Of a stretch of 64,000 nucleotides of DNA, positions 13,707 through 46,979 are shown piece after piece (the stretch's first letter is position 1; each line of letters begins with the position of its first letter). This DNA is from Podarcis liolepis (lineage: Eukaryota), in NCBI GenBank assembly GCA_965112155.1, contig OZ218098.1. One strand, 5' to 3'. Both the position numbers and the translations under genes were made by a program. The notes below the pieces were generated by a model. That model was given only the letters and a program-made list of their open reading frames with translations, did not search any database and was not told the DNA's origin.

Positions 13707-13825
13707 GAAGAAGCTGACCCTGATTAAGGAAATGCTGGCTGGCTGTGGGGCAGGGACCTGCCAGGTGATTGTCACCACTCCCATGGAGATGCTCAAAATC
13801 CAGCTGCAGGATGCAGGCCGAATTG
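13707..13825 (+). CDS. SLC25A22: SLC25A22 coding exon
   Basis: Long pyrimidine tract + tgtcag, donor gtacct; 119 bp encoding [39 protein letters not shown] with carrier signature PxExxKxxLQ; phase fits neighbouring exons. Confidence 0.97.
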
Positions 13826-14613
13826 GTACCTCACCTGTCTTTCTTCTCTCCTCACCATGCCCATGCAGCAACAGAAAATGTCTCCCATGGCTTTGCAGAT
13901 GATGGGAGGGCAGTGGTGGGAGGGAAATAGGACTGAACTGCGCTGGGATCAGGTTTTATTAAGGGGTGATATACAAATATCCAAAACTAAGTTTTTATTG
14001 CTTAGCCCAAAGGCCATCAACGGTGAATCAGTTTAATGTGGGGCACACCACTGAGTATAATTAGAACACAACATAATGACATAATCGGTTACAATATACA
14101 ATATATACCTTAATAAATTTTAGGGATTCGGAGCCCTTTCAGCAGTTCTGTTAACTGAAGTCGTTCTTTCCCTGAGTAGCTCCAGGATATATTACATCAC
14201 TGGGAAGGACCTCAGCCTTGTGAGCCAAATGATGAGTTGTTCTCTTTCCATTCTCCTGATGTGAGAGAGCCTGAAATTGTATCTTTAGATATCTGTATAG
14301 GGAAGAGGAGGCTGGTAAAACAATAGCTTGTGTTCAGCTTGTGAATTATTAAACTGGATAACTAATGCAAAAAAGGGAGGAGGATTAGTTGCCCCTTATG
14401 GTGTGTTTTTTCTATGACACTTTCTTTCTGTTTCCACCCCAGTTAGAAGGTCTGGCAGTGTGCCAAAGCCCTTAAGCATTAAGAACTTGTGTTCTTGCCC
14501 CAAACAACCTTACCTACCATTGTTATGTTGTCTCATTTTCCCCCAAGTAAATTTCAGGACAAAATTTAGAATACTGGATCTTTTCTTTTGACAGGTGTGG
14601 AACATAGGGGGAA

Positions 14614-14615
<2 letters not shown>

Positions 14616-14657
<42 letters not shown>
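14616..14657. repeat. (GT)n microsatellite
   Basis: Direct reading. Confidence 0.95.
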
Positions 14658-14660
<3 letters not shown>

Positions 14661-15177
14661 AGTTGGGAGAGGGGATAGCTTAATGATACTCACTATCTAT
14701 TGCATTAACAATGAATTCTAATAATGCAGGAACTGCTTATCACAGAGGAATTCAGTGGGAAATTTTTGCAACCACAGAATTGAACCACCAACGCTGTTTG
14801 TTTTCAAAAGCTCCAGTATAAATATCCTGTTAGACAGGACTATTGTGAATAACAACCACTCATCGCTGTGACTTAGTATCTCCCTCTGCTTCTGATTTGC
14901 CCATTTGCCTCTGAATCTTTTTGTATCTTACCAGTTTCCAGTTGTACTTCAAACCCTCTGTTACTAATGTGTTAAATTAGAAGGCTGCAGAAAGATTCTC
15001 ACTGCAGCACAATACTGGGATTTAGTGCCTCAGTTGCAACAGAGGCTATGTGAGCAAATATATTAGCTCAGGGGATTTACATGGGCTCCATCTTCTGATA
15101 AAATAGGAGAAGTGCAGTGGAAGAAGTTTGGGGGAGAAGAAGTGAACAGCCTGCATAGATCTCTGGGTAAATGCTTT

Positions 15178-15226
<49 letters not shown>

Positions 15227-15306
15227 TTTCGTAGATTTTCACGGGTACAGGAATGCAGGTTTTGGTGTCTTCGGGTGTCTTCCCGTGTAAGAGTTGGGGT
15301 GTCTAG

Positions 15307-15344
15307 GCGACGTTTCGACGAGGTCTCACTCGTCATCTTCAGGC
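15307..15344 (-). ncRNA. Mirror copy of the minimal hammerhead ribozyme-like motif
   Basis: Exact reverse complement of 15533-15570. Confidence 0.65.
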
Positions 15345-15532
15345 TGGTGCTTTCGGCTTCTTGTTACTCACTGCTTCCTACTTTCCTCTGCATCGGCGGC
15401 AGCCGCAGCGTGGCGCACGCGCGCCAGCACCCAACTCCAGAGTTGGGTGCTGGCGCGCGTGCGCCACGCTGCGGCTGCCGCCGATGCAGAGGAAAGTAGG
15501 AAGCAGTGAGTAACAAGAAGCCGAAAGCACCA

Positions 15533-15570
15533 GCCTGAAGATGACGAGTGAGACCTCGTCGAAACGTCGC
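15533..15570 (+). ncRNA. Minimal hammerhead ribozyme-like motif (sense to SLC25A22)
   Basis: CUGAAGA(U)-stem II GACGAG/CUCGUC with 6-nt loop-GAAAC-GUC; stem I and III very short. Confidence 0.65.
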
Positions 15571-15942
15571 CTAGACACCCCAACTCTTACACGGGAAGAC
15601 ACCCGAAGACACCAAAACCTGCATATATATATATATATATATATGACAGTGGAGTGCACTGTGTGTTATGCTCAGAGAATATGGTGTTGTGACAGCCACA
15701 TAAATATTTTACTTAGAGCTAAAATTCAACAGCACAACTTAACTGGATAAAGGCGGTTTCTAGTGACTTATCAGAGGGCAGTACAACTGACCTTAAGCAA
15801 TGTTCAGGTCATTACATTTGTGGCTGGCCTATTCATCCTTCTGTCAGAAGCAAGACATTTATGTTATGTCATTATCTGTAACTTGCATGCTGCATTCATG
15901 TTTATTGCGGTAAATGACAACTCTGTCTTGATTCCTCTTCAG

Positions 15943-16114
15943 CTGCTCAGAAGAAGCTAATGGCCGCACAAGCTCAGTTAAACCCTTCCACTGGTGCTGG
16001 GGCAGCAGAGTCTGTTGTGGAGACACGGACGACAGCAATGCAAATCACAAGGGACTTGCTTCGGAGCAAAGGCATCGCAGGACTTTATAAGGGACTTGGC
16101 GCTACGTTGCTAAG
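15943..16114 (+). CDS. SLC25A22: SLC25A22 coding exon
   Basis: attcctcttcag acceptor, gtaggg donor; 172 bp encoding (A)[56 protein letters not shown](R). Confidence 0.96.
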
Positions 16115-16468
16115 GTAGGGCACCCCTTTAGGCCCTCTGGAGGACCTAAAATCCAAATGGTGCCCAGTAGTCTTGGGTAACTACAAGGAATGAATAAGAA
16201 CACATGCTGTTCCCTGGGTATTGACTCAGTTAGGGATGGGGACAGAGTGGGTAAGGGAGGGAGATGGCGATACACTGCACTGGAGTTTCATAGTACTAAA
16301 TGAGAACAGTGTAGAAAGAGAAATATCTGATGCATTTGAAAACTATGGAAAGGGGAATTGTCTTTCTGTGCACAACTACCCACCCCTTACAATTGGCATG
16401 GGGCAGCTTGGTATTAAAGGACTAAAGGAAAGAGCTCTTCCCTCATGGTCTTGCTTCTCCTTCTGCAG

Positions 16469-25470: not shown

Positions 25471-25614
25471 AGGCTATCAGCCTTCAGGCCACAAATAGGT
25501 CCCCCCCCCATGGAAATGTGACCAGGAAAGGTGTGACACAAGGCTATCAGCCTTCAGGCCACAAATAGGTCCCCCCCCATGGAAATGTGACCAGGAAAGG
25601 TGTGACACAAGGCT
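25471..25614. repeat. Tandem duplication of a 70-bp unit
   Basis: 25471-25540 repeated at 25541-25609 (C9 vs C8 only difference), AGGCT at all three junctions. Confidence 0.95.
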
Positions 25615-25734: not shown

Positions 25735-25890
25735 GTCCATCTAACTCAGTGTTGTCTACACTGACAGGCAGCAGCTGTCCAGGGTTTCAGATGGTACATT
25801 TCCACCCCTACCTGAATATGCCCAGGATTGAACCTGGGACTTTCTAGATGTAAAGCAGATGTTCTGCCACACTGAGTTATGGCCTTTCTC
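25735..25890 (-). mobile_element. tRNA-derived SINE (similar copies at ~43790-43968 and ~46300-46455)
   Basis: Minus strand: ggccataactcagtgtggcaga (A box) ... cccaggttcaatcctgg (B box) followed by SINE body. Confidence 0.7.
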
Positions 25891-30235: not shown

Positions 30236-30332
30236 CTGTTTTTGAACTCTGCTAAAAGCCAAGCTGGAGGGTACTTGAATATAATTTGATAAAGCTTCAG
30301 CTTGCTTACCAAGTTTAAAGTCAGGACCCTCC

Positions 30333-30378
<46 letters not shown>

Positions 30379-30381
30379 ACA
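30236..30381 (+). repeat. Dispersed inverted duplication, copy 1 (~95 bp unique + (CT)n(CA)n)
   Basis: Reverse complement of 44909-45083 with a few substitutions. Confidence 0.9.
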
Positions 30382-40700: not shown

Positions 40701-43211
40701 CCTAACCCGGTTCTTTCTAGATGTTGTTGGACTACAACTCCCATCATGACTGCACATGCAGCATGGTGGCAAGGAGCTGGAAGTCTAATATGTGGAGGAG
40801 ACCAGTCTGGTGAAGGCAGTTGTCTGTTAGCAGTTGATACATTTGTAGATGCTGTCTGGATTATGAGGGGCCATCACTGACAAGTCCGTGACCATACATT
40901 GCTTGTTGAATCTTTCTGTGCTGTCATCATTTGGGGCTGGTTTTGGAGATTGCTCTTCATTTGTTTAGTGGTGGGGAGGGGAGGAAGAGTCCTACTCCTT
41001 CTTCTGCGGTTGATGAGAATCTGGACCGCACTTAACTTTCTGTCAAAGCCAACATGACACTCACATTCTCTTTAGCTATGTCAGATTTTTTTAAAAAATA
41101 ACATCAGGTAACAGAAACACAATCTTCACCAGGACCACAGTGCTTGGGGTGGGAGGAGTTCAACCCTTTCCTTCCCCTGCCAAGGCTACAGCTGTTTTGG
41201 TTTTAATTCCTGACTTGGTTGCTGAAGACACAGGTCTAGTGGGCTGGGAAATGTGTTTGTAAAGCAACCACTGGCCCTCTTTTACACCTGGAGATAGATG
41301 CTGTGTGGTTTCTCTTTAGAGCAGCAGCTCCATGAACTGCTCAGTAGCTGACAAAGGGAAACAGGGTGCCTCTACCCTTTGAATAGTTGTGTTAGAACTG
41401 GGAGTTTTTGCAGTTGCAGCTCAGCTGGACGTGACAAAGTCATCTACTCAAATCTCCCCCTGCTCTTTCTTCTTCCACTACTATTTGTGTATGCAGGAGC
41501 CTCACCCTCCATTTCAACTAGTTAGCTAGCAATATTATTAAGGCAGGAATTTCCCCTAAACATTTCAGCAAACTGCCCATTGTCTTCTCTTAGCATGTAT
41601 TGGAGCCACCCTAATTAGTGTGCACACAATTTTCTACTCTTGAGGTGGCACTTTTGTACATTGATTCCAAGGTACTTCCAGGTGCTTCTACCTGTTGCTA
41701 CAGTGAGGAACAGTTGCTGGCAAACAGGAAGCACAACAGAGACACTGTATTGCAGGGTTATAGATCTATAGGAGTGTTTTTTTGGTTGGACAATACTTCT
41801 GTTATCTGGGCCAATCCTGCTAACCCATGTAAAGCTAGTACGTACTAATCTGAGTGGGCCTCTATAAGGACATAATAGCCCTGCTTGATCAGACCAAAGG
41901 CCTTTTTAATCCAGCATTCTGTGATGCTGAGACGAAAATTTTCGTTGTGAAATGGTTGTTGCAGTGGGCTGCAATATTCTAACTTGAACCCCTTCCAGAA
42001 TATTGATTTTCCCCTCTGACCAAGAGTCCTGAGGTTCTTGTGCTGTGCCTGCCTCTGTTTCTAGTCTGACATCTTTCAAGAAGGGGATAATGGACCCTGG
42101 AAAATGACTGTTGAAGGGGAAGAGAACAGGCTTTTTGTAATTATGGCTCTTTACAGAAAAACTAGTGTGACTCATCTATTTGGTGTAGGGTAGATATCTT
42201 TCAGCAGCACAGACAGGGGAAAATAAAAGGGACAGATTAAATTTCTAGGCTTCTGGAGAAAGGAAGAGATGACAAATGCAGGAAGGGAAGCAGAAATCCA
42301 ACAATTGCAGTGGTCAGGTTTATTAGAACCAGTAGGACCCCCAACAAAATATGGAAGTATACCCCCCCCAATCCCTTTCCTCCACGACTCCAGCCTTTAG
42401 CTAGAAGGCATTTAAGCTAGCCAATTGTTTATTTCCATCATTGGCAATCCATATTCCGTGGTTCCTGGAAGCCATTAAGCATGCTCAATACTCATTGGTC
42501 TGGGTTGTGGGAATTTTGAGAGAATGGAGTCCCCCCTTGAAACAGCCCCAGGACTCAGCTACATTAGTAAACAACAACAACAGCTTTGTAAATGCGTTAT
42601 AAACATGCAACATCAGATGGCACTATGGAGCACAAAACTTTTCTTAATGTTCCCCCACATTCTAGCCATTTTGGCGCCTTTTGAAATTGAGTGATTTGAG
42701 CTCACTGTTAAAAGGAACAAGTGTGGCCTGCAACAAAATGTTGCAGTGTGTTCTGATACCCTAAGAGATGTGTGCTTGTTGGTGGCTCTAGAGCCTTGCT
42801 GGTGCTACTCAGTGTGGAGGTGGAGTTTCAGGAGTGGGATGAAAGAAAGGGGGGGGGGATTCTGCCCCCCTCACCCTCTTGACTGTGAAAAGCAAACGAA
42901 AAACAACCTACTATGCAATTCTATAAATTTCAAATCAAAAGTAAATTCCATTTTTATTTCAATGGAGCATTCTCCCAAGTAAGTGGATATCAGATTATTC
43001 CCTACCTCTTGAGTCACCACTGCAATAGCCAGATCCCTTTCAGGAGCTAGCACTTTACTGAAACAACATATATATAGTGAGAGCAGAGCAATCCTAATCA
43101 TGTCTACTCATAACTAAATTGTATTTAATTCACCAGGGTTTACTCCCAGCAAAAGGAGGTTGGGATTACATCCTAACTTTCCCTTCCCCTGCTGGAAAAG
43201 CCAAGCGCTCG

Positions 43212-43289
<78 letters not shown>
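43212..43289. repeat. (CT)n(CA)n compound microsatellite
   Basis: Direct reading. Confidence 0.95.
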
Positions 43290-43291
<2 letters not shown>

Positions 43292-44905
43292 GTGGGATGA
43301 AGATTTATGCATTCATTTCAATGAATTCATTCCCCCACTCCTCTCTGCTCTGAATTTATCAGTGTTCTGTTTGTTTGTTGTAATTTTTACAGTAAAGTTG
43401 CTTGTTTCTGTTGCACTGCTCCAGAAGAAACAGTCCTCTCAAAGAAGCCTTCCCCTCAAGACAATGTGGCTATGGATCTGTTCTCTCCCCCCCTCCCCCT
43501 TTATAAATTATTGGCTTTGTTATTCTGCTTCCTCCTTTTCTTTGCTTGCACATACCCAACAGCTTAGTGCAAGCTAGTAATTTGGAAGGGGAGAATGCCA
43601 CTGCAGCTTGCTAAACAAAGTGAAAAGAGGGGGTGGAGGAGTGTGGGGGCTGGCTCTCTCAGCCGTGTTTGCATGTTCTCTCCTTGGTACAGGATGCTGT
43701 GCTGGGAGAACTATGAATAAAAAGGCCGCAGTTAAATGACATAGGAAGGGGGAATGGCAAAAACTGAGAGGGCTGCCATTCCGAGTTCACTTAGGAACAT
43801 AGGTAGCTGCCTTATGTGGACTCTGACCAGCTGCTCCACCTTGCTCTGCGTTGTCTACTCTGACCGGCACAAGAGGCTCACCAGGGTTCTTTCTGGAGAT
43901 TGCAGAGATTGAACTGGGGTCTGTCTTCATGCAAAGCGGATGCTTCTACTGCTGAGCTTTGGCTCTTTCCAATCGCTTGAAAATTTGGGGAACATGGCTA
44001 AAGTGCTTGCCCTGCATTGATCCTATGCTGCCTAATACGTTCTATCCTAAATTTTACAATGATGGTATATGTTATGTAATAAGGGGTTTCACTCCCTTGT
44101 CCAGGTGCACAACTCCAGGAGAAAAGTACGAACCATGTAGCTGGGTGCAGATTAATCAAAATCTCCATTTTATCAACCATCCACCCCCACTCAAGCTGCC
44201 AGATCACTGACCCACCTACCCCATTGGAGGCTCTTACTTCCTAGGAACCTATTCTTGGAAAAGGAAGCTTTATCCAAGATACAACATTTTAGGATCTGTA
44301 ATATCAAGGTTCTCCCCCCCCCCCGCCTGGTATTTGGAGGCAGAATACTTGCTCTGTGATGCTTAATCTGTGGTGGTTCATTCGTTGGGGCTTCAGTGAT
44401 GACCAAGCTGAGCTTTCTTTTTTCAAGTTCTGGTTGGCTGAGTCGTAAGTAATTAAAAGGCCTCCTCTAGTCTATTTATGGCTTTGCTTTTAATTTCTAG
44501 CTATTTCAAACTAAGTGCTAGGAAAAGCAGCTCATAGGGGAATAGTTAGCAGCCCCCCTCCCACTCTTTGTCTGCTCAAAATGACAGCCTCCCAAGGGTG
44601 CTTTGGTGCCCCGGGGAACACTGGTGAGCTGCAAATACAATTTAAGACGTGCTGCACTGTTAGAATCTGATGTTTTTCTGTGGACTGTGGGTTATGGAGC
44701 TTTGGTATGTGCCAGTTGTGGCAGGTCTGTTGCAAGGTATGTGCCAGGTGTGGTGGGTGCAGTTCTCTGGAGGTGGGATGGGGAGCAGGGATTGTTAAAA
44801 AAAAAAGCTGTTCATGCTTTTTGAGTGTGTGTGTGTGAATGGGCCATGTCCTGTTTGATGGGGACCCAGCACTGCCTGCCTTTTCACCTCCCTTGGGGGA
44901 AATAA

Positions 44906-44908
<3 letters not shown>

Positions 44909-44983
<75 letters not shown>

Positions 44984-45083
44984 GTCCTGACTTTAAACTT
45001 GGTAACTTGGTAAGCAAGCTGGAGCTTTATCAAATTATATTCAGGTACCCTCCAGCTTGGCTTTGAGCAGAGTTCAAAAACAG
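44909..45083 (-). repeat. Dispersed inverted duplication, copy 2
   Basis: (TG)n(AG)n followed by reverse complement of 30236-30330; carries an extra AACTTGGT duplication. Confidence 0.9.
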
Positions 45084-46209: not shown

Positions 46210-46979
46210 AAGATTTCATTGTGGATTTGTGAAAGCTTCTTATCAAGGACCTCTAAAATGGAGGTTGCAAATTTAAGAACACCTATCAATCAATGCATAG
46301 GTAGCCATTGATCCATCTAGCTTCATATAAGCTACCACATTACCTAGCAGTGGGTCTTCTGGGTTTCTGACAGGGGTCTTTCAGCCTTACCTGAAGATGC
46401 CACGAATTGAACCTGGGACCTTCTGCATGCAAAGCACTGAACTACTTTCCTTCCTCCTAATAGGAAGTGAATCCCACCGAGCTTAGTGAAATTTGCATCC
46501 CTTGTGTCAACATGCCTAGGATTGTGCTGCATGTCTCCTACAACCTTCCAATAATTCCCAGGGTGTTTGTTCCTTGCCTCTGGGATTTTGATTCTCCCAA
46601 GATTTACTGCTGGTCTAACAAAGTGTGATGTTGGGAGCCTCTGGGACTTGGTCTCTGGAGTGTGGCGCGGGAGACTAAAGGAGTGGCGGTGTCCCCTTCT
46701 GGGTCCAGGTTTGAAACTGATGAGCAAAAATGGTCAAAAAAGGTACCATGCCATTGGAGCTACTGACATATTAAACCACTGCCATCAGGTGCCCATGTTT
46801 TGTCCCACCTTGTCTGTTTATTTCTCTTTCTCAGCGGAGTCTGTTGGAGAAAATGAGGCACTGCTTTTGCCATCTCCAGTCTGCACTCAGCTAGTCCCCA
46901 CCTACTTACAACCCACCCACAGGGTGCTGCTGGCTCTCAGCTTCCCCCTCCTTATACTCGGTGCTGCCCTGTAGAAGTC

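Follow-up and report, generated by a model that had tools for sequence, protein, structure and literature searches.

The DNA considered here, 64,000 nucleotides of contig OZ218098.1 of the lizard Podarcis liolepis (assembly GCA_965112155.1) and hereafter called the window, contains a perfect palindrome of 372 bp within an intron (13826-15942) of a mitochondrial-carrier gene. Both exons adjoining the intron match the Pfam family Mito_carr, the only part of the gene's identity to be confirmed; the paralogue is presumably SLC25A22, a label which agrees with the human protein. The palindrome is very probably a recent, dead-on-arrival insertion of a Penelope-like element (PLE), of the Penelope/Poseidon clade, into a (TA)n microsatellite already present in the intron. 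As such it is ordinary for this class of elements, its non-routine part being the centre, which is host-derived and features a splice-like junction. Read evidence comes from Logan contigs of four lizard DNA runs, namely X1 and X3 from organism A, X4 from organism B and X6 from organism D. The features are listed below, a slash marking exon boundaries here and throughout:

13707-13825, plus strand: upstream coding exon of the mitochondrial-carrier (SLC25A22-like) gene, donor G/GTACCT
15177-15181: TGACA, left flank of the microsatellite, pre-existing (sequence and length of the empty site in X4)
15182-15224: left (TA)21 tract, one half of the target microsatellite (sequence)
15225-15252, minus strand: PLE tail, nt +85 to +112 of the element's open reading frame (ORF) in the minus-strand copy (sequence; high-copy)
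15253-15366, minus strand: PLE part of the left arm, mirroring 15511-15624, with 30 nt of pseudo-long terminal repeat (pLTR) and ORF nt 1-84 (contig depth)
15309-15342, minus strand: minimal hammerhead motif of the minus-strand copy (pattern match)
15367-15437, minus strand: non-PLE inner part of the left arm, mirroring 15440-15510 (low depth; host-locus contigs of X1 and X6)
15438-15439: spacer CA, centre of the palindrome (crossed by a 62-nt contig of X1)
15440-15510, plus strand: non-PLE inner part of the right arm, 71 nt, CpG-rich, candidate host 5' exon (contigs)
15511-15624, plus strand: PLE part of the right arm, with pLTR at 15511-15540, ATG at 15541 and end at ORF +84
15535-15568, plus strand: minimal hammerhead motif, sense to the host gene (pattern match)
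15625-15643: right (TA) tract, other half of the target microsatellite (sequence)
15644-15648: TGACA, right flank of the microsatellite (sequence)
15943-16115, plus strand: downstream coding exon of the mitochondrial-carrier (SLC25A22-like) gene

The two arms, of 185 nt each (15253-15437 and 15440-15624), are exact reverse complements separated by the dinucleotide CA, as concordantly determined by reading of the window, a repeat finder and a script; the repeat search found no second long perfect inverted repeat in the 64-kb window. A tail of 28 nt is found on the left side only, and the unit is flanked by (TA)21 at 15182-15223 and (TA)10 at 15624-15643, with TGACA outside both tracts. The CpG observed/expected (o/e) ratio, calculated by script, is 1.01 in the palindrome vs 0.14-0.17 in the surrounding intron. 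The palindrome lies on the sense strand of the host gene, the start of the downstream exon being located 318 nt past the right arm. Most of this anatomy had been described by an initial annotation, made from the sequence alone: its arm coordinates and CA spacer are exact, the arms being 100% complementary, and the CpG-rich unit within a CpG-poor intron, the 28-nt tail restricted to the left, the TGACA on both outer sides and the placement in an intron about 320 nt before a coding exon were all found again, the exons being assigned to the carrier gene by Pfam. The flanking repeats, described as (AT)22 and (AT)11, are the same tracts, but the register was off by one base and they are better read as (TA)21 and (TA)10.

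The element occupies the outer 114 nt of each arm, which comprise the last 30 nt of the pLTR and the first 84 nt of the ORF. Over 15204-15371 and 15498-15623 the summed contig depth is as high as 10^4-10^5 in the four runs, corresponding to three organisms. In the outer arm, depth declines toward the 5' (inner) side, and the tail, itself high-copy, features about 1/10 of the depth of the adjacent arm bin; the pattern is that of an abundant family, characterized by strong 5' truncation and by an optional tail. Repeat and pattern searches found no further copies of the arm, or of its PLE part, in the 64-kb window.

Across the boundary between pLTR and ORF lies a hammerhead motif (15535-15568, plus strand; mirrored at 15309-15342, minus strand), which reads CUGAAGA-U-GACGAG-UGAGAC-CUCGUC-GAAA-CG-UC and includes the ATG of the element (15541) within the ribozyme core. 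The pattern CTGANGA-N(15-30)-GAAACGTC is matched by the two arms only, 0 matches being expected by chance. Minimal hammerheads of metazoan PLEs are marked by a long helix II with the pair G10.1-C11.1, a palindromic 15.2/16.2 and a very short helix III (PMC4209133); all these marks are found in the arm motif, where helix II is 6 bp and helix III 1 bp long. Such minimal forms are considered to require a dimer or the protein of the element (PMC4209133, PMC11167929). The conserved core nucleotides (CUGANGA...GAAA...UH) are all in place, and by its sequence the arm motif fits the minimal PLE hammerhead class, below the Rfam family threshold.

Taking the ATG as +1, the right arm ends at +84, while the tail on the left corresponds to +85 to +112, so that codons 1-28 are present in the right arm and codons 1-37 in left arm plus tail. 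With the 37-aa start of the ORF as query, phmmer returned a single match among 1.84 billion representatives, P0001 (E = 6e-4), a 189-aa fragment from a Logan contig, 68% identical over residues 1-37. Past residue 30, P0001 can be aligned without gaps to Poseidon_Ac_1p, in its N-terminal domain, at 42% identity (48 identities over 113 positions, counted by eye); Pfam and ESM Atlas searches of P0001 were blank.

Poseidon_Ac, a PLE of the Penelope/Poseidon clade from Anolis carolinensis (Arkhipova 2006; Frangieh et al. 2024, PMC11167929), is the known element to which the insertion can be most directly compared. In its consensus (File S1, PMC11167929), the pLTR ends in ...CTGAGG and the ORF starts with ATGCCTGCC...GGGCGAAACGTC, the ORF start sequence being ATGCCTGCCATAGATGTGGGCGAAACGTC. 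Its tail spans approximately nt 85-119, between two start sites of the reverse transcriptase (RT), the distal of which is located at 111-118 nt, in an AC-rich stem-loop (PMC11167929). In both elements the hammerhead straddles the pLTR/ORF boundary, the ATG is placed at A9-N-G10.1 and codons 7-9 contain GAAACGUC. The limit between arm and tail falls between ORF +84 and +85, as in Poseidon_Ac, and the stretch at the distal RT start position is, here too, AC-rich. The two elements also share a preference for AT-rich targets and, probably, a homologous N-terminal ORF region, linked via P0001; the outward-pointing 3' ends are those to be expected when both strands are nicked and extended. They nonetheless belong to different families: helix II is altered at 4 of 6 pairs, yet remains paired, the pLTR sequence differs, the first 30 ORF residues are barely alignable, and the tail is of 28 nt vs about 34.

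The overall architecture is that described for PLE insertions by Craig et al. (2021, PMC8557442), namely a pLTR, an inverted 5'-truncated copy, a one-sided tail of 30-40 bp and a bias for microsatellites. As in PLEs generally, an inverted and 5'-truncated copy adjoins the other one, the tail is found at one end, the pLTR contains a hammerhead, and a target-site duplication is unreadable, since the insertion lies in (TA)n. Unlike what is generally seen, both copies contain just 114 nt of the element and end at exactly the same position, and the centre is formed by non-element sequence. In addition, the (TA)n bias has been published for Naiads and suggested for Neptune, not for Poseidon-type elements.

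Concerning the target, among 24 listed rows of loose ends of other copies of the family, 7 show plain (TA)n, and several more are AT-rich; the ends next to (TA)n correspond to the outer end, 15253, and to inner ends at 15341, 15354, 15511 and 15536. In assays with Poseidon_Ac, AT-rich DNA is cleaved on both strands and extended from both (Frangieh et al. 2024, PMC11167929). In other PLE clades, a bias for microsatellites, (TA)n among them, has been described in the case of Naiads and proposed in that of Neptune (Craig et al. 2021, PMC8557442). Insertion into (TA)n is thus frequent, but not exclusive, inside a general AT-rich preference.

The physical reality of the palindrome is best documented in X1, where a contig of 62 nt (15408-15469) crosses the centre with no differences and a depth of 23, comparable with single-copy depth. 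An inner-arm contig of the same run (15449-15509) has a depth of 47, twice that of the centre contig, as is to be expected if both arms collapse onto one contig. Centre contigs or perfect inner-arm contigs are found in X1 alone, none being present in X3 or X6, whose flanks differ from the window by 1-2.5%. In X4, a contig of 686 nt contains both flanks (14700-15171 and 15662-15761) with just 50 letters between them, corresponding to an empty site: 28 of these letters are accounted for by the unique flank of the window, and the remaining 22 fit (TA)11. The length of the empty site fits TGACA(TA)11TGACA plus flanks, while 23 letters would be expected from a single TGACA without the repeat; both TGACA, and the microsatellite between them, are therefore older than the insertion. 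TGACA was also considered as a target-site duplication, which is ruled out by the same length.

The insertion is thus lineage-specific or polymorphic, being present in the reference lineage and absent from the sister organism. The identity of the arms, the CpG o/e of 1.0, the empty site in X4 and the centre contigs exclusive to X1 all lead to the conclusion that it is young. The initial annotation had proposed a young fold-back PLE insertion, and this view is sustained by the high-copy arm, the hammerhead with the ORF start, the coordinates of the tail and the empty site; its wording "very recent" agrees with the identical arms, with their CpG content and with the empty site in the sister organism. 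It had further suggested a search for other genomic copies of the arm, which were indeed found, for the outer part, at the depth reported above in four read sets. Two of its proposals need amendment. The second arm had been interpreted as an inverted, tail-less copy of the terminal repeat: inverted and tail-less it is, but each arm is composed of 30 nt of pLTR, 84 nt of ORF and 71 nt of non-PLE sequence. Likewise, a family targeting (TA)n had been suggested; (TA)n is favoured, as seen in 7 of 24 listed ends, but is not a strict target.

A number of observations weigh against this picture of a young PLE insertion. The Rfam scan of 15100-15750, with E up to 10, detected no hammerhead model (RF00163 and relatives) and returned just generic miRNA-hairpin matches, such as MIR898, because the stem is long and perfect; helix I does not exceed 2 bp, and the monomer shows no folding advantage over shuffled sequences. 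No RT or GIY-YIG sequence was found within the 64-kb window, and a full-length member of precisely this family was not encountered. Logan contigs do not provide single molecules across the whole hairpin, X1 is possibly the assembly's own sample, and the content of the empty site is deduced by letter count. The insertion is, in any case, a fragment devoid of RT and endonuclease, incapable of moving again.

The two copies, both 5'-incomplete, are arranged head to head, with their 3' ends outward. Outward 3' ends, and the use of one distal and one proximal RT start, are what two independent primings, one from each nicked strand, would produce. The endonuclease of the element would have nicked both strands of the AT tract, a cDNA being primed from each nick, as in the in vitro precedent of Poseidon_Ac. 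In the minus-strand copy RT would have started at the distal site (+112), hence the tail, and in the plus-strand copy at the proximal one (+84). Both cDNAs may then have been extended as far as the 5' terminus of the template RNA, where one strand would have jumped onto the end of the other, with one extra nucleotide each producing the CA spacer. For the palindrome to be perfect, both cDNAs must end at the same base. In the read sets, other copies are joined head to head at non-mirror positions, e.g. 15278 to 15576 and 15316 to 15552, and two separate truncations are therefore needed to form them. Other copies of the family form small palindromes of their own, such as one with centre GGAACAGAGCTCTGTTCC (15341-15368 / 15509-15536, read sets). 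Two steps of this scheme, the priming of two cDNAs and the run-off at the RNA 5' end, are themselves inferred, and this counts to its disadvantage.

The inner 71 nt of each arm (15440-15510 and its mirror), which make up about one third of the arm, are not PLE sequence, and over 15372-15497 depth falls to single-copy level. These 71 nt match another locus of the host, single-copy and CpG-rich. In X3, a contig of 896 nt and depth 12.7 (flank depth being 8-10) holds 15440-15510 and continues with GTACTTGGGGCC..., the letters after 15510 reading GTACTTGGGGCCTCGGAAG... In X6 the host locus has ...GTCATGGTGAC upstream of 15440, and features ...GCCGAGCCGTTGTCATGGTGAC before and GTCCTTGGGGCC... after the shared stretch. 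X1 also contains the host locus, with A at 15479, where the arms have C. Pattern searches did not find this source locus in the 64-kb window. An origin of the GC-rich centre from rRNA or snRNA was considered and ruled out by the single-copy depth and the lack of Rfam matches; read-through from a PLE copy abutting host sequence is unlikely, the host locus continuing with non-PLE sequence in X1, X3 and X6. At the upstream loose end of the host locus, the reverse complement reads GTCACCATGACAACGGCTCGGCGCCGCCGC, a possible divergent ORF start (MTTARRRR), which would possibly make the source a bidirectional CpG-island promoter.

The junction between host and element sequences can be analyzed from both sides. 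Past 15510, host-locus contigs continue with GT(A/C)CTTGGGGCC, the locus reading ...GAAGCAGTGAG and then GTACTT at the junction; PLE copies have TGCTCTGTTCC before 15509, then AG, then TAACAAG. Host locus and PLE consensus thus overlap by AG (15509-15510), which allows three junction registers, only one of which gives a GT...AG intron: it has GAG/GT on the host side and, on the PLE side, CAG/ with a pyrimidine tract (9 of 11 preceding positions). This register and the tract suggest a spliced host-exon/PLE transcript. We consider it probable that a chimeric mRNA served as template, a CpG-rich 5' exon of the host (15440-15510) having been spliced to an acceptor within the pLTR. The acceptor would lie 24 nt upstream of the hammerhead core and, in the source PLE, would read ...TGCTCTGTTCCAG/TAACAAG; the host exon would end in ...GCAGTGAG/GT, and the spliced product would read ...GCAGTGAG/TAACAAG..., i.e. 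...GCAGTGAG/TAACAAGAAGCC. Such a chimeric mRNA would have been mobilised in trans as a retrotransposition template. Other family copies stop exactly at 15511, the putative acceptor junction base, beside (TA)n.

Precedents for single parts of this scheme are available. PLEs are known to retain introns and to carry host genes (PMC8557442), and the Penelope of Drosophila virilis has an intron whose end coincides with the 5' edge of helix I of the hammerhead (PMC4209133), a position comparable to that of the putative acceptor. U6/L1 chimeras, L1 5' transductions and spliced integrated L1s similarly feature host sequences joined 5' of a retroelement cDNA; the difference here is a GT/AG junction, which points to a host exon spliced onto a pLTR acceptor. 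In the library of literature searched, no account of PLE chimeras of this type was found, a weak indication that none exists. Inner-arm bins of X3 and X6 hold host-locus contigs alone, and the chimera therefore looks like a single event, not like a new chimeric family. Against splicing, it should be said that the host "exon" is a candidate defined by sequence, that its donor, GAG/GTACTT (GTCCTT in organism D), is weak, and that a template switch at the 2-nt microhomology would yield the same DNA. The upstream exon of the carrier gene ends in ...GAATTG/GTACCT (13820-13831), a non-consensus donor of the same GTAC type as the putative one of the host locus.

Palindromes and (TA)n tracts assemble poorly, and PLE structures are known to trouble assemblies (PMC8557442); with read support that comes from contigs, the palindrome might be a fold-back artefact of sequencing or assembly, not present in the DNA of the animal. 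This we regard as very improbable, given that in X1 k-mers crossing the centre occur near single-copy depth and those of the inner arm at exactly double (23 and 47), and that the structure agrees with a known biological insertion signature, down to the coordinates of the tail. A fold-back DNA transposon or miniature inverted-repeat transposable element, bounded by long inverted repeats and inserted at TA, would account for the inverted repeats and the TA-rich flanks; however, the arms carry the pLTR/ORF junction of a PLE and their outer ends coincide with the RT start sites as mapped, the inner end point varies widely among other copies, which have no fixed length, the inner third is single-copy host sequence and the 64-kb window contains no second copy, all of which make such an origin scarcely credible. 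A more serious alternative accepts the PLE and questions the second arm, which might have been added to a single 5'-truncated copy by later fold-back replication or hairpin repair at the cruciform-prone (TA)n, or by snap-back self-priming of the cDNA. The arms are identical and share a C at 15479, a position occupied by A in the host locus (X1, X3 and X6); copy-back would explain this common C more directly. Copying of the entire first arm would, however, put a tail on both sides, while the tail is one-sided; the published signature of PLE insertions consists of head-to-head copies and a tail at one end (PMC8557442), the non-mirror joins in the same read sets demand two independent truncations, and a loop of 2 nt is too tight for hairpin priming. 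Formation by copy-back is thus distinctly improbable, and two separately primed cDNAs are preferred.

A different question is how host sequence came to be joined to the element. Template jumping is typical of non-LTR-type reverse transcriptases, and in the same PLE insertion RT might have switched, at the AG microhomology and without any splicing, to an unrelated cellular RNA, as in U6/L1-type chimeras. This habit of the enzymes, the 2-nt overlap at 15509-15510 and the weak donor on the host side speak for a switch. It would need, however, the coincidence of the AG overlap with a host GT after it and a pyrimidine tract before it, having an estimated chance of about 1/256 before the tract is even counted; moreover, PLEs possess functional introns, including the D. 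virilis one which ends at the edge of helix I (PMC8557442, PMC4209133). We therefore hold a template switch to be rather unlikely, and splicing of a host exon to the pLTR remains our preferred explanation for the junction. Taken jointly, the two preferred explanations describe a spliced host-exon/pLTR mRNA, used in trans, from which cDNAs on both strands, started at the two RT start sites, would have run off at the capped 5' end and would have been joined by their ends; this combination is put forward tentatively, as a possible rather than a probable course of events.

As for the host gene, the RNA of the palindrome is predicted to fold into one uninterrupted hairpin of -446 kcal/mol (z = -47). 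Of the two hammerheads, that of the right arm alone has the sense orientation in the pre-mRNA; being single and buried in the predicted 185-bp duplex, it is not expected to cleave the host transcript. The joining of host and PLE sequence creates GTGAGT, a consensus 5' splice-site hexamer (15506-15511, plus strand; mirrored at 15366-15371, minus strand), which lies on the sense strand of the carrier gene, inside the predicted duplex. Long perfect intronic double-stranded RNA (dsRNA) is a plausible substrate for editing, dicing or sensing, and palindromes nearly devoid of a spacer and flanked by AT repeats may plausibly undergo cruciform-driven instability. The insertion resembles inverted Alu pairs, in being a long intronic inverted repeat sense to the pre-mRNA, and palindromic AT-rich repeats, in being a perfect palindrome with near-zero spacer and AT-repeat flanks. 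By analogy, it might plausibly act as a substrate of ADAR, Dicer or dsRNA sensors, or as a fragile site.

Other repeats were observed in the window. An inverted pair of 80 nt (30236-30315 / 45004-45083), 96% complementary and 14.7 kb apart, probably consists of copies of a repeat with a microsatellite tail: its members adjoin compound (CT)n(CA)n microsatellites (30332-30381 and 44909-44980), a third of which is found at 43208-43297. A direct repeat of 90 nt (25768-25857 / 46347-46436; 72% identity), containing ...GAATTGAACCTGGGACCTTCT...AAAGCA, looks, by its sequence, like a tRNA-derived short interspersed element. An exact direct repeat of 44 nt (25502-25545 / 25571-25614) starts with C8, with a spacing of 69 nt start to start.

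As a locus, the palindrome is a commonplace by-product of a retroelement active in lizards, and its interest lies in what it preserves of the process. A wild insertion reproduces the two RT start sites and the tail mapped in vitro for the PLE of Anolis, and its head-to-head form agrees with the nicking and extension of both strands seen in vitro. The perfect and perhaps polymorphic hairpin of 185 bp, 318 nt before a coding exon, would lend itself naturally to tests of dsRNA editing and sensing, and of the instability of palindromes. From the GT/AG junction of the host-derived centre it would seem that chimeras containing spliced host exons can be mobilised by PLEs, which bears on intron retention and template choice in these elements. 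If the joint scheme of a spliced template used in trans and of end-joined cDNAs from both strands is true, it comprises two things so far not seen in vivo for PLEs, and would explain perfect PLE palindromes generally.

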